Below are positions 13,141 through 61,283 of a stretch of DNA of 64,000 bases, piece after piece. Source of the DNA: Octopus sinensis (Eukaryota); the NCBI RefSeq assembly GCF_006345805.1, contig NC_043014.1, positions 6,386,001 to 6,450,000 on the forward strand, given 5' to 3'. Numbering within the stretch: position 1 is the first letter of the stretch; each line of letters starts with the position of its first letter. A program made the position numbers and the translations under genes. The notes under the pieces are model-generated. The model was not told where the DNA came from and ran no database searches. It saw nothing but the letters and a program-made list of their open reading frames with translations.

Positions 13141-13384
13141 CTTCCTGTCCATCACAAAATCGCAGACTGAGCTTTCTTTTTATTTATTTCTGTTTTTTGT
13201 TTGTTGAGTACTTTTTCACTAATTAACTAATTACTTTTTTATCACTTATTAGTTTCATCATATTTCGACAGGAAGAACTATTGCCAAATTTTCTCTAATT
13301 CTTATTTGACCTGGTTCAAATATGTCACGTGGTTACAATGCTTTCGTTCGAGGCAGTCGACGCTCGTTTTCTCTAGCAACCAAC

Positions 13385-13469
13385 ATGGTGACGACGACGA
13401 CGACGATGATGATGATGATGATGATGATGATGATTATATCTGTGATGATTCTTCCATGCTCGTCACTCA
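13385..13469 (+). CDS. Ig-family gene 1, exon 1 (signal peptide MVT5M9IISVMILPCSSL)
   Basis: ATG at 13385 (in-frame upstream ATG at 13322), phase-1 gtaagt donor at 13470. Conserved at the same relative position upstream of all three Ig exons. Confidence 0.75.
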
Positions 13470-14411
13470 GTAAGTTCAGATTAAAAACAACAAATTTATT
13501 TCTTCAACATTTTCTCTCCCTTCTCTCGCACTTACTCTCTCCTTTTACTGTTTCTTTCTCTGCCACGCTCTTACTCATCATATAATATATATATATATAT
13601 ATATATATATGTATATGTATGTATGTATATATATTTATATGTATATATATATATACGTAAGTATATGTATATACACCTATACGTATATATATATATATAG
13701 ATAGATAGATAGATAGATAGATAGATAGATAGATAGATAGATAAGTTTCTTTATTGGCCACACAGGGCTGCACACAGATGGGTTAAGTTACAAGGTAGAG
13801 GTTTTCTTTTGGGGGATGAAAAAAAAGGGGGTGGCGTAGGTTTTCGATCAAGAGGGATCGTAAAGGGGAAGAAAAGAACAAAAAAATAAATGAATAAATA
13901 AAAAAGGTAGATAGATAGATAGATAGATAGATACATAATACATGCATACATATGCATGCATGCATACATACATACATACATACATAGACATACATATATG
14001 TGTGTCTATGTGTGTTTGTGTGTGTGTGTGTGTGTGTGTGTGTGCGTGTGGGGGATGGGTCATTTGTATGAATTTCATAAATGAGGCAGAACTCATCACA
14101 GAAGAACTGTACCTGGAAACAAATAAGCACAAATAATCTTCAGAAGCCTTTTAACATGACTATCCAATGAATCAGACGTTACAATCAATCGCTGCTTGAA
14201 TACCGAATCGGAAGTGTTGACAGACTCGCACCAAATGTTCTTTATTAATTTTTAATATAATGCTGGCTTTGGTGGATTTGAGATTATATGGTGTTATGGG
14301 AGTGTTCACTGACCTTTCTCTCAACTACACCCCATGCGTAATAGACGAGTGGATTGGGGCCTGGTGAGCCAAGAGTTTAGGTGTCTTGGAGAATATGATC
14401 ATGAATGCATT

Positions 14412-14960
14412 GAGCTGGCAGAAGCGTTAGCACGCCGGGCGAAATGCTTAGCGGTATTTCGTCTACCGCTATGTTGTGAGTTCAAATTCCGCCGAGCTCG
14501 ACTTTGTCTTTCATCCTTTCGGTCGATAAATTAAGTACCAGTTACGCACTGGGGTCGATATAATCGACTTAATCCGTTTGTCTGTCCTTGTTTGTCCCCT
14601 CTGTGTTTAGCCCTTTGTGGGTAGTAAAGAAATAGGTATTTCGTCTACCGCTATGTTGTGAGTTCAAATTCCGCCGAGCTCGACTTTGCCTTTCATCCTT
14701 TCGGTCGATAAATTAAGTACCAGTTACGCACTGGGGTCGATATAATCGACTTAATCCGTTTGTCTGTCCTTGTTTGTCCCCTCTGTGTGTAGCCCCTTGT
14801 GGATAGTAAAGAAATAGGTATTTCGTCTGCCGTTACATTCTGAGTTCAAATTCTGCCGAGGTCGACTTTGCCTTTCATCCTTTCGGGGTCAATTAAATAA
14901 GTACCAGTTAGGCACTTAATCCCTTTGTCCTTGTTTGTCCCCTCTATGTTTAGACCCCTG
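14412..14960 (+). repeat. SINE with tandemly triplicated 182-bp 3' segment
   Basis: Head gagctggcagaa...cttagcg followed by units starting at 14454, 14636, 14818. Confidence 0.88.
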
Positions 14961-15095
14961 TGGACTAAACATAGAGGGGCCTTATGAGATGGTGCATGGA
15001 CGTGTTTGAGGACGTACGGTCCTCCTTTGCATACCCTCTCTATTCAGGGCCTCACACGTTTCCCCAACACTTCTGTGTAGATAGCAGCATTGACT

Positions 15096-15484
15096 TTTGG
15101 AAGCACTCCGTCGGTTACGACGATGAGGGTTCCGGTTGATCCGAATCAACGGAACAGCCTGCTCGTGAAATTAACGTGTAAGTGGCTGAGCACTCCACAG
15201 ACACGTGCACCCTTAACGTAGTTCTCGGGGATATTCAGCGTGACACAGAGAGTGACAAGGCCGGCCCTTTGAAATACAGGTACAACAGAAACAGGAAGTA
15301 AGAGTGAGAGAAAGTTGTGGTGAAAGAGTACAGCAGGGATCACCACCACCCCCTGCCGGAGCCTCGTGGAGCTTTTAGGTGTTTTCGCTCAATAAACACA
15401 CACAACGCCCGGTCTGGGAATCGAAACCGCGATCCTCCAACCGCGAGTCCGCTGCCCTAACCACTGGGCCATTGCGCCTCCACG
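15096..15484 (-). mobile_element. tRNA-derived SINE, near full length
   Basis: A-box-like tggcccagtggttag and B-box-like ggtttcgattcc on the minus strand; near-identical copy at 54947-55325. Confidence 0.85.
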
Positions 15485-58449: not shown

Positions 58450-58531
58450 ATGGTGACGACGACGACGACGATGATGATGATGATGATGATGATGATTATA
58501 TCCGTGATGATTCTTCCATGCATGTCAGTCA
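58450..58531 (+). CDS. Ig-family gene 3, exon 1 (signal peptide MVT5M8IISVMILPCMSV)
   Basis: Third paralog, phase-1 gtaagt donor at 58532, upstream in-frame ATG at 58387. Confidence 0.75.
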
Positions 58532-59829
58532 GTAAGTTCAGATTAAAAACAACAAATATATTTCTTCAAGCTTTTCATTCCTTTCTCTCACCTCTTTCAA
58601 CAACTCTCTCTCTCTCTCTCTCTCTCTCTCTCTCTCTCTCTCTCTCGCACGTATACTCTCTTTTCTTTGTTCTTTCTATGTCACTCTCTTACTCTTACTA
58701 TATGGGGGAGTGCATGTGTGTGTGGGTGTGTAACTTAAACCCCTTGGAAGCAAGTGAGGGTGACGGTTTTCTGACATTTCACTGTTCAAATCTCACCGAA
58801 ATTAAATTTGCCTAGCAAGAGTATCGGTGGTAATAATCAACCACCTCCTCTAAAGATTCTTTCCCGTTTACTGAAATCAGAAACCATGTTTCAATAGCAA
58901 TCTGTATATCATACTTAATGCAGATATGTCGTTCAAAGACTGTAGTATTCGTCTCCAGAAAAATTATCTGATGGACGTATGACGTATTCCTCTTTAGACG
59001 CCATGTTCATAAGCGGTCACTTCTTGACGTCATTTTCTGTTCTTTGTTTTCTGTAACATTTTCACTTCCTGATGTTTAATGCCTCTTTCTTCCAACCAGG
59101 AAGTCAAGCTCGACATCCATGTCATCCTAAGTCTTCCGCTGCTTCATTTCCCTTCAGTCTTTCAAGTTCACCTCCTAATTTTTCAGGCCTTCTTTCTTCA
59201 TTACGTAACGAAGGAACTACTGCATGACGCAGAAATCTCAGTTTCTTGGTTTATCTCACGAAGTTACTTCCTATTTACCGCAGCAGCCCTAGCCGTCACT
59301 TCTTCCCTAGATACTCTGTCTCATTTGCAGTGCTAAAATTATACTGAAATAAAACCAGGAGCAGACGAACATCGTCCAGAAGAAGATGTAACATTGCTAA
59401 ATGCTCCGTTTCGCTTCCTTGAGAGTCGTCAGTAGGAAGGATTCACTGAGCAACTGCTTGCTAAAGCGATTTAGCCCCTTATGATGCAGAAAAACAGTGA
59501 TTTTTCAGTCACTTGTGTCCCAAATAGCCGGAATGCTGAATAGTAATTTGTTGTAAGCGACGGAAGCAGGATTATTTCAATAAGGCAATCTATAAATCAT
59601 ACTTAAAGCCACATTGTATGCCACGTTGTACAACGATTACTGATTGGCTAGTTAAAAACCAATTGAAACAGCGTAAAGTTGGGTGAACATTTTGACGGAA
59701 ATCACAATTTGGTCGACAAATGGCGACGCCCGCAGATGACGTCATATGTGCAAAGAGTTCGTTGTTACTCACCCTCTACAAATTATATAAGTCTATATTG
59801 TACCAAGATCAAATATGGGATATATATAC

Positions 59830-60248
59830 ATATAGATAGTTAGATAGACAGACAGACAGATAGATAGATAGATAGATATATAGATAGATAGATAGATAGA
59901 TAGATAGATAGATAGATAGATAGATAGACAGACAGACAGACAGACAGACAGACAGACAGACAGACTGATAGATAGATAGATAGATAGATAGATAGATAGA
60001 TAGAGATAGATAGATAGACAGACAGACAGACAGACAGACAGACAGACTGACTGACAGACAGACTGATAGATAGATAGATAGATAGATAGATAGATAGATA
60101 GATAGATAGATAGACAGACAGACAGACAGACAGACAGACAGACAGACAGACAGACAGACAGACTGATAGATAGATAGATAGATAGATAGATAGATAGATA
60201 GATAGATAGATAGATAGATAGATAGATAGATAGATAGATAGATAGATA
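59830..60248. repeat. (GATA)n/(GACA)n microsatellite
   Basis: Direct reading. Confidence 0.95.
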
Positions 60249-60950
60249 AGTTTCTTTATTGGCCACACAGGGCTGCACACAAATGGGACAAATTACAAGG
60301 TAGAACTTTTCTTTTGGGGGATGAAAAAAACAAAAAACAAAAGAAACAAAAAAAAGTGGCTTAGGTTTTCGATCAAAAGGGATCGTAAAAGGGAAAAAAG
60401 AAAAAAAAACGAAAAAAAAGGGAAAAAAGGGAAAGAAACAAAAGAAAAGAAAAAGGAAAATAGAAGAAAAAAGAGGAAAAAGGGGAAGAGGAAAAAAACG
60501 ATCAATAGAGATCGTGTATCACAGTGTCATGATGTACGGTGTAAAGGGGGAAGCAGATAAGGTTTATCCGTGGGAAGAAAAGCCTACGAAAAAGACCACG
60601 GTAACCTCGATCAATATTGTTATATTAAATAGATAGATAGATAGATAGATAGATAGATAGATAGATAGATAGATAGATAGATAGATAGATAGATAGATAG
60701 ATAGATAGATAGATAGAAAGACTCATTCGAGGTAGAATCAACAAAGAAGTGTTCCGTCCAGTGAGAGAAAAATATCGATTTAATACACAAACCGAAAGAG
60801 CTACTTATAGTTTCATGCTTTTATGATACTTGATCAGATAACTTTCGGGTTTCGCGTCTAAAGTAGAAGCGATAATTAAATCTGTCTTTGAGAAATTGTT
60901 TCCGTCCCATTTTTCGTGTATTCATTCATTGATTTGTTCCTCACTCATAG

Positions 60951-61283
60951 ATCGTGTTGAAATGACAAGCCTAACGCCTTTCGATGGATTTGGGGACGAA
61001 GAACTAACCAGAATGGAAATTACATGTAACTTTGTAGCCAACAACTTAGGTTTCTTCAGACTCAGACGAAACGATGAAGTCGTTGTTGATATTGGTTTCC
61101 ACGAAGTTGTGGGAGTTTTTGAAGTCATCTATGCCGCGAAAGATTTCGGTTGCATCTTACCGCGAGTTGCAGCGACTAGAGGTGAATTGCATTGTTGGAA
61201 AAATAACTTGGATTGCAGAGATGTAGCATCTTATACATGTGAGATATCGAATGCAATCGAGTCGAATTCAAGGTTTCTCAAAG
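60951..61283 (+). CDS. Ig-family gene 3, exon 2 (V-like Ig domain)
   Basis: catag acceptor, gttaat donor, 333 nt, phase 1-1. EITC...DVASYTC; about 60% aa identity to gene 1. Downstream exons not found in the window. Confidence 0.85.

Follow-up and report, generated by a model that had tools for sequence, protein, structure and literature searches.

Three tandem genes for predicted two-immunoglobulin-domain surface proteins in Octopus sinensis, probable members of an octopod-restricted family

Three four-exon genes in the window

The stretch of DNA analysed here (the window) covers 64,000 nucleotides (nt) of the Octopus sinensis genome (C18:6386001-6450000); it has a G+C content of 36.8%, is rich in microsatellites and contains several reverse-transcriptase open reading frames (ORFs). 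Three adjacent sets of paralogous exons lie on its forward strand. An earlier note on this DNA, made from the letters alone, had taken them for a tandem family of surface proteins with a signal peptide, two immunoglobulin (Ig) domains and probably a glycosylphosphatidylinositol (GPI) anchor, and the present analysis follows up that proposal. The exons are as follows, on the coordinate scale of the window:

13322..13469, + strand: gene 1 exon 1, with the start codon, a long n-region, a poly-Thr/poly-Met hydrophobic core (signal peptide) and the donor GTAAGT, phase 1; equal to residues 1-49 of RefSeq LOC118766831
16575..16907, + strand: gene 1 exon 2, V-like Ig domain (AlphaFold, Foldseek and cysteine motif), 333 nt, phase 1-1
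18086..18427, + strand: gene 1 exon 3, C-like Ig domain (seven-strand sandwich, residues 164-270), 342 nt, phase 1-1
19138..19232, + strand: gene 1 exon 4, an SGS small-residue stalk, then the hydrophobic C-terminus ...LSLLFLALASCR and the stop codon; candidate GPI-attachment signal
32231..32396, + strand: gene 2 exon 1, signal peptide with a longer Thr/Met run, closest to exon 1 of RefSeq LOC118766832 isoform X2
35755..36087, + strand: gene 2 exon 2, V-like Ig domain, 87.7% nucleotide identity to the V exon of gene 1
40789..41103, + strand: gene 2 exon 3, C-like Ig domain, 315 nt
41698..41815, + strand: gene 2 exon 4, tail exon in which 1 bp is missing and the frame is shifted when compared with genes 1 and 3 and the orthologues (DNA and protein alignment)
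58387..58531, + strand: gene 3 exon 1, signal peptide
60951..61283, + strand: gene 3 exon 2, V-like Ig domain, 333 nt
64244-64567, + strand: gene 3 C exon, 324 nt, past the end of the window
65389-65483, + strand: gene 3 tail exon, past the end of the window

Gene 3 is a complete four-exon gene, the last two exons of which are located 244-1483 bp beyond the window end. The length of exon 1 is 148, 166 and 145 nt in genes 1, 2 and 3, respectively, that of the V exon is 333 nt in each, and that of the C exon is 342, 315 and 324 nt; therefore, every intron is in phase 1. Every acceptor is AG and every donor is GT in the three genes, and the donor of exon 1 is the consensus GTAAGT. All ten exon coordinates given in the earlier note hold in the window, and its GT-AG, phase 1 junctions held at every junction after the models had been spliced. 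The starts that it gave for the signal exons (13385, 32294 and 58450) are present as in-frame ATG codons, but each is the second one, and the first in-frame ATG is located 63 nt further 5' (13322, 32231 and 58387). The N-terminal extension from the upstream ATG, MSRGYNAFVRGSRRSFSL..., is shared with O. bimaculoides and with distant paralogues.

The spliced gene 1 equals, letter for letter, the RefSeq "uncharacterized protein LOC118766831" (P0001) of O. sinensis, in agreement with the cephalopod origin proposed from the letters, and the V and C domains of gene 3 are identical across 219 amino acids (aa) to RefSeq LOC118766832 isoform X2 (P0005). The exon sets had been called unrecognised, and it is true that the ORF track does not join them, but genes 1 and 3 are already modelled in RefSeq. 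Moreover, the spliced frames of the three genes are kept in O. bimaculoides, O. vulgaris and Argonauta. Judged by sequence, and with spliced models existing in RefSeq, the exon sets are real genes and not chance ORFs.

Fold of the two Ig domains

AlphaFold was run on the gene 1 protein with a family alignment of 46 sequences (41 divergent paralogues and five close homologues), and the resulting model has a mean pLDDT (predicted local distance difference test score) of 83.6 and a pTM (predicted template modelling score) of 0.70, with residues 50-270 mostly above 90. Domain 1 is modelled as a nine-strand sandwich (residues 51-160, pLDDT >90 over 50-160), the strands of which, as assigned by DSSP on the model (51-58, 71-79, 84-89, 92-100, 105-111, 115-117, 125-133, 142-148 and 157-159), fit the order A-B-C-C'-C''-D-E-F-G. 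Domain 2 is modelled as a seven-strand sandwich (residues 164-270), and two helices are predicted, one N-terminal (27-42) and one C-terminal (286-304). In the PDB, Foldseek found 1321 matches to the model (E<=1e-3); the 50 listed are all V+C chains with an Ig fold, headed by the ectodomains of BTN2A1 and BTN3A1 together with Fab heavy and light chains (probability 1.0, 10-17% identity). The earlier note had named AlphaFold and Foldseek as the means to check for an Ig fold, and two confident beta-sandwiches that match V+C chains were obtained.

At the level of sequence, a family-profile search of the PDB sequences returned nearly exclusively Ig proteins, all of them weak (best E 0.002), and in this profile search kappa constant domains were aligned weakly (E 0.006); the single-protein phmmer search found contactin-5 and SLAMF6 weakly (E about 0.002-0.003). 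The weak matches of the two kinds of search include contactin-5, SLAMF6, CD22, Fab light chains and Fc-gamma receptors. In a Pfam scan of 17 family members, Ig_2 appeared at E<0.1 in just two of them, I-set in none, and C2-set was below threshold. The family alignment shows the landmarks of domain 1 as C75, an aromatic residue in the C strand (W/F) and D140-x-G/A-x-Y144-x-C146, and those of domain 2 as C192, W208 and C258, invariant or nearly so in the family. Furthermore, C117, C131 and C138 are extra invariant cysteines and C235 is near-aligned, and these eight cysteines in all point to two additional disulfides, one of which may be interdomain. According to the model, the family has two Ig sandwiches and belongs, at the fold level, to the immunoglobulin superfamily (IgSF); domain 1 is likely of the V-set.

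Signal peptide and C-terminus

The core of the signal peptide is a Thr/Met run encoded by an (ACG)n(ATG)n microsatellite, located at 13385-13440, 32294-32370 and 58450-58505. The length of the run differs in every copy (T5M9, T7M7VM5, T5M8 and T8M6), and no other part of the protein is as conserved as the signal peptide (mean pairwise difference 0.12). In another frame, the same ACG/ATG microsatellite reads as poly-Asp.

In genes 1 and 3 and in the orthologues, the C-terminus consists of SGS or SSS, about eight polar residues, TAWFSVS(R/K)-LSLLFLALASC-R and the stop; its uncharged hydrophobic run has 11-12 residues and ends one residue before the stop. By inspection, the pattern in gene 1 is SGS - PISALLHT - AWFSVSRLSLLFLALASCR, with similar ones in gene 3 and the orthologues, and farther members of the array have a cleaner C-terminus, SAAS-GMLYTK-WILVVNLILLFLVAAIS-R. 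Across these C-termini, 0-1 residue follows a hydrophobic run of 11-17 residues, and small residues precede it (SGS, SSS or SAAS). This fits the look of a classical attachment signal, and the products of genes 1 and 3 are probably GPI-anchored. Together with AlphaFold and Foldseek, the inspection of the C-terminus bears out the layout of signal peptide, V-like Ig, C-like Ig and short hydrophobic C-terminus that had been proposed.

Other members of the family end differently. The paralogue P0049 (LOC115221679) has a transmembrane (TM) stretch of 27 hydrophobic residues, followed by RKK and a cytoplasmic tail of about 190 aa, while other paralogues end in Thr-rich, mucin-like stalks with no hydrophobic tail, and these tail-less forms are possibly secreted. 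On this sequence evidence the family appears in GPI-type, transmembrane (with cytoplasmic tail) and mucin-stalk forms. It could therefore be asked whether the C-terminal peptide of the three genes is a GPI signal at all, or whether their products are type I membrane proteins with nearly no cytoplasmic tail, or secreted. The hydrophobic run of only 11-12 residues after R/K in genes 1-3 and the lack of a hydrophobic tail in some members (P0020, P0021 and P0005) speak for this. However, such a run is too short for a helix that spans the bilayer, it stops 0-1 residue before the stop codon with a small-residue triplet at the right distance, as in the classical GPI pattern, and the true TM paralogues look quite different; we thus consider a non-GPI C-terminus unlikely and a GPI anchor the better explanation for genes 1 and 3.

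A signalling signature in the TM paralogues, that is, an immunoreceptor tyrosine-based inhibition or switch motif (ITIM or ITSM), was also considered. No ITSM (TxYxxV/I) was found, and a scan of the tails of the TM paralogues for YxxL/I/V gave one LHYAEL in P0049 and none in P0023. With one ITIM-like motif in O. sinensis and none in Argonauta, the signature was rejected as too weak.

Distribution of the family

A HMMER profile built from five family members was searched against 1.84 billion representative proteins (E<=1e-3), and 30 of the 40 matches were looked up. Twenty-six of these 30 carry a species name, namely O. sinensis, O. bimaculoides, O. vulgaris and Argonauta hians, with the exception of one weak bivalve Ig match (E 4e-5); the remaining four are unnamed Logan contigs. 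The Logan contigs for P0040 are 1-kb, genomic-looking pieces from SRR11869390/91. All of the named matches are labelled "uncharacterized", "hypothetical" or, automatically, "Ig-like domain-containing". No name or description of the family was found in databases or literature, in line with the earlier note, which did not recognise it as a named family. As far as the HMMER profile sees, the family is restricted to octopods (Octopus and Argonauta).

One might suppose that a named bilaterian family, for instance Dpr/DIP/IgLON, CD2/SLAM or butyrophilin/B7, has divergent orthologues in these genes, since a layout of two Ig domains with a GPI or TM tether is common to them, phmmer weakly matched contactin-5 and SLAMF6 (E about 0.002-0.003), and butyrophilins are the best matches in Foldseek. 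However, the profile search of the 1.84 billion proteins gave no non-octopod match apart from the weak bivalve Ig protein. In addition, the Pfam models I-set, V-set and C2-set are all below threshold, the Foldseek identities are 10-17% with Fab chains equal in score, so that the match is one to a generic V+C arrangement, and neither a B30.2 domain nor an ITSM is present. Orthology to a named family is therefore highly improbable in our view. CD48/CD58 and Dpr, which had been offered as examples of the layout, are not more than layout analogues, as the sequence similarity is not significant and the canonical disulfide is present in the octopus V domain. The family is a new, unnamed, lineage-restricted instance of a well-known kind, the tandem IgSF surface-receptor family.

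Extent of the array and synteny

The O. sinensis genome searched comprises 2.72 Gb in 13,516 contigs, and the copies were counted with three single-protein queries. Seven four-exon units (signal peptide, V, C and tail), six on the + strand and one on the - strand, are located within about 155 kb; LOC118766833 is unit 5. The array continues downstream of the window, and no family unit was found in the 30 kb upstream. Genome-wide, the three queries gave 33, 55 and 66 exon-level matches, nearly all on contig C18, where they form two clusters about 30 Mb apart, one at 6.40-6.55 Mb (about seven copies) and the other at 35.95-36.88 Mb (about 30 copies), the latter including the TM-type gene and mucin-stalk forms. 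A few further matches are on unplaced scaffolds. The genome total is about 35-40 V exons. The extent of three genes given in the earlier note was thus too small, with at least seven genes in the array here, while its proposal of tandem paralogues in an expanded, lineage-specific family agrees with the seven-gene array, the second cluster and the octopod-limited matches. The genome-wide copy number that it had called for comes to two clusters on one chromosome, with about 7 and 30 copies. Outside the clusters, an intronless open frame of 349 aa with 71% identity to residues 1-301 of LOC115221679 is present at C1:167307319-167308212 (+), and is probably a retrocopy.

Directly upstream of the array, a guanylate cyclase exon is located at 1678-2154 (+) of the window (Pfam Guanylate_cyc, E 6e-26), and in O. 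bimaculoides a 625-aa HNOB/HNOBA/Guanylate_cyc gene is located directly upstream of the orthologous array. Gene order is conserved between the two species, because this soluble guanylate cyclase gene adjoins the array upstream in both. Past the other end of the window by 7-16 kb lies unit 4 (71148-80351; L031-L033). Its exon 1 differs hardly at all from those of genes 1-3, but its V and C exons belong to a divergent subfamily with about 40% aa identity, which in O. vulgaris has a different signal exon. An assembly gap (Ns) is present in intron 1 of unit 4; the window itself is free of gaps.

Sequence evolution of the Ig exons

The ratio of nonsynonymous to synonymous substitution rates (dN/dS) is 0.46-0.92 for the V domain and 0.67-1.2 for the C domain, high even between orthologues. 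By exon, gene 3 is orthologous to copy B of O. bimaculoides (dS 0.21-0.23) and genes 1 and 2 to copy A (dS 0.15-0.23); since the dS values are similar, genes 1 and 2 arose by duplication at about the time when the two species separated. Despite the high dN/dS, the structural residues of the Ig domains are invariant in the family alignment. The mean pairwise difference is low in strands A, C, C', F and G (0.06-0.17) and high in the BC, C'C'', C''D and DE segments (0.55-0.73); among close members, the variability of the V domain is 0.43 in loops versus 0.27 in strands (p=0.011).

Gene 2 differs from its neighbours. Its tail exon has GCAT-G in place of the GCATGG of genes 1 and 3, and because of this 1-bp deletion its C-terminus is out of the family frame, ending in ...FLSPKFPFSFWFLQVAASTIPFLLQ instead of ...WFSVSKISLLFLVLASCR in the protein alignment. 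The intact ORF of 289 aa that the earlier note had joined for this gene does have 289 aa from the second ATG, but its tail exon is the frameshifted one. Intron 2 has 4.7 kb compared with 1.2 kb in gene 1, a difference accounted for by a reverse-transcriptase element at 37-39 kb. No matching database protein was found for its V and C exons, the nearest being gene 1 at 66%. Gene 2 is probably a recently damaged copy.

These observations lead to the question of whether all three copies are for the most part duplicates in decay, which arose neutrally by segmental duplication, have hardly any function, if any, and keep open frames only because they are young. The dN/dS of 0.84-1.35 between genes 1 and 2 is in favour of such decay, as are the frameshift, the reverse-transcriptase insertion in intron 2 and the lack of an own RefSeq protein in gene 2. 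On the other side, no copy in either species has lost its open V and C frames at a dS of 0.15-0.5, the splice sites are intact, the structural Cys, Trp, Tyr and Asp residues are invariant across members that are only 25-30% identical, dN/dS between gene 3 and copy B of O. bimaculoides is 0.46-0.67, and the variability is non-random, with loops above strands. We therefore regard general decay of the array as improbable: genes 1 and 3 are unlikely to be decaying, and only for gene 2 is such a fate plausible.

Probable conversion mosaic around the exons

Exon 1 with about 130 bp upstream of it is 90-100% identical between copies, and the same is true of about 300 bp of intron before the V exon and of the tail exon and its flanks of about 250 bp each, while the V and C exons are only 55-93% identical. 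One such segment, which marks a gene-conversion tract, is given here:

16275..16574, + strand: conserved intron segment of gene 1, 93-100% identical among genes 1-3, far above the adjoining V exon

An (ATAG)n microsatellite is located about 230 bp upstream of each V exon (16242-16344 in gene 1) and also at the orthologous site in copy A of O. bimaculoides.

The most similar pair of genes shifts along the unit: it is 1 and 3 upstream of V (97-99%), 1 and 2 upstream of C (95%), 1 and 3 downstream of C (91%), 2 and 3 upstream of the tail (96%), and 1 and 2 downstream of the tail (99-100% over about 400 bp). In this last segment, 19233-19650 and 41816-42230 (3' of the tails of genes 1 and 2) are 99-100% identical while the C exons are 81% identical, which indicates a very recent conversion or duplication tract. 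Similarly, the V exon of gene 3 is orthologous to copy B, yet the intron upstream of it is 99% identical to that of gene 1 and 94% to copy A of O. bimaculoides. The mosaic points to inter-copy gene conversion or unequal crossing-over that would not extend into the Ig exons or would not be tolerated there. Hypermutation of the exons was considered as another cause of the contrast between exons and introns and rejected: the exon dS between orthologues (0.15-0.22) is about the overall intron divergence (about 15%), and the near-identity of the flanks is specific to the O. sinensis paralogues, so that hypermutation is unneeded.

Mixed models between units

Mixed-unit isoforms exist among the RefSeq models (P0005 in O. 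sinensis, P0002/P0003 in O. bimaculoides; loci L047 and L048). They bear on another possibility, namely that the locus works as a set of cassettes, in which exon 1 or the signal peptide, V and C exons of one unit are spliced to the exons of a downstream unit to give combinatorial isoforms, as in clustered protocadherins or UGT1A. All exons are symmetric (phase 1-1), so any join between units is in frame; in LOC118766832 X2, the V and C exons of gene 3 follow an exon 1 that resembles that of gene 2, and O. bimaculoides LOC106878953 X2 combines signal peptide, V and C of copy A with the tail exon of copy B, no tail exon having been found behind copy A; in unit 4, a type-1 exon 1 stands before type-2 Ig exons. 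However, a tail exon with a stop is present in each of genes 1, 2 and 3, the basis of the proposal is automatic gene models, read-through joins of tandem paralogues are a common annotation artefact, and exon 1 of P0005 matches no genomic copy exactly, its Thr/Met run differing in length. Splicing between units is, accordingly, a doubtful explanation, and we keep to separate four-exon genes.

A more far-reaching version would combine such splicing with the mosaic. Conversion would keep the promoter with exon 1, the intron flanks and the tail interchangeable, selection would preserve distinct Ig exons, and inter-unit splicing would give more isoforms than genes, which would make the array a diversity-generating recognition locus and an octopod counterpart of the clustered protocadherins for self/non-self or neuronal identity. 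We mention this as a speculation with little probability.

Mobile elements and satellites

The reverse-transcriptase ORFs of the window are the following:

20455-22546, - strand: retroelement ORF
34159-34974, - strand: retroelement ORF
37223-39764, + strand: retroelement ORF, inside intron 2 of gene 2
43276-45000, - strand: retroelement ORF

Matches to the Pfam reverse-transcriptase model RVT_1 are located at 21143-22135, 37223-942 and 43276-45000. In addition, a 182-bp satellite (2.5 copies, 93% match) is present at 14453-14916 in intron 1 of gene 1, and related arrays recur many times on both strands over the 174-kb array region.

Proposed role of the family

Considering the fold, the exon structure, the distribution and the pattern of variability, we assume, with a probability of roughly 0.7, that the three neighbouring genes belong to a family of small IgSF glycoproteins of the cell surface, restricted to octopods and duplicated in tandem, in which four exons encode one module each. 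Several points weigh against this. The support for splicing is indirect and comes from the RefSeq models, and the shifted frame in the tail of gene 2 and the lack of a RefSeq protein for this gene count here too. In genes 1-3, the putative GPI signal was judged by eye, and its hydrophobic run spans just 11-12 residues and is interrupted by R/K. With the five close homologues, AlphaFold gave a poor model (pLDDT 42.5). No Pfam Ig model reaches its gathering score (Ig_2 17.4 bits compared with a cut-off of 27, V-set 14.4 compared with 26), and because of this the Ig assignment rests on structure prediction and motifs. A C-domain dN/dS near 1 is also compatible with relaxed constraint, and the mosaic identity may partly be due to assembly chimerism, as there are N gaps in the array outside the window.

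If these genes do encode an IgSF family, a GPI anchor would tether the proteins to the outer leaflet of the plasma membrane, and the products of genes 1 and 3 could act as recognition or adhesion ligands or co-receptors. The V domain, through its variable BC, C'C''-D and DE loops on a conserved GFCC' scaffold, would determine their specificity together with the C domain. GPI forms cannot signal alone, and thus they presumably work with TM paralogues or other partners, a mode that may be likened to the two-Ig GPI/TM families of the CD2/SLAM kind, as an analogy of layout and not homology. The array would evolve by duplication and by inter-copy gene conversion or unequal crossing-over, with selection keeping the Ig exons different. 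As for the biological context, the role in immunity, allorecognition or neuronal wiring put forward in the earlier note is a suggestion only. The high dN/dS would fit immune and reproductive recognition to a similar degree and a function in neural identity slightly less well.

Known expansions of surface receptors in octopods are those of protocadherins and G-protein-coupled receptors, and we know of no diversified Ig-type recognition receptors described in octopods. With about 35-40 members, the family offers a concrete set of candidates for immune recognition, for cell-cell identity or for the recognition of gametes in cephalopods, and it presents fast-evolving ectodomains within conversion-homogenised scaffolds, as a finding at the level of a catalogue. 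Moreover, it is too divergent for Pfam, and structure prediction with a family-specific alignment recovers as IgSF genes what had been labelled "uncharacterized".

Comparison with known systems

The CD2/SLAM families resemble the octopus family in having a signal peptide, a membrane-distal V-like and a membrane-proximal C-like Ig domain, members that are GPI-linked (in the octopus, putatively) or TM, a tandem cluster, one domain per exon in phase 1, quick evolution and TM forms with tyrosine motifs. However, the sequence similarity is not significant (SLAMF6, E 0.003), no ITSM is present in the octopus family, and the lineages are unrelated. Furthermore, CD2-family V domains lack the canonical B-F cysteine pair, while the octopus V domain keeps it and has three extra invariant cysteines. 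The butyrophilin/B7 proteins BTN2A1 and BTN3A1 gave the best Foldseek match over both domains (E 4e-7, probability 1.0) and likewise have an IgV-IgC ectodomain on a single-pass or lipid tether, but with 12-17% identity, TM-scores of about 0.3 and Fab chains scoring equally, the match is one of fold; no B30.2/SPRY domain was found in the Pfam scans of the 17 octopus family members. Like the octopus proteins, for which a GPI tether is putative, Dpr/DIP and IgLON are small, GPI- or TM-tethered proteins with two or three Ig domains, in expanded families with binding-specificity codes. Their domains are of the I-set type, readily recognised by Pfam and conserved across bilaterians, whereas the octopus family fails the Pfam Ig thresholds and has no non-octopod homologue in the profile search except the weak bivalve Ig match.

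A likeness of another sort is found in conotoxin superfamilies, snake venom phospholipase A2 and some immune receptor arrays, where the signal exon and the introns are far more conserved than the exons for the mature domains. Unlike in the conotoxin and phospholipase A2 type of gene, the synonymous sites of the octopus exons have diverged too, and the orthology of exons and flanks differs; for these reasons, gene conversion of the flanks, and not only accelerated evolution of the exons, explains the octopus pattern.

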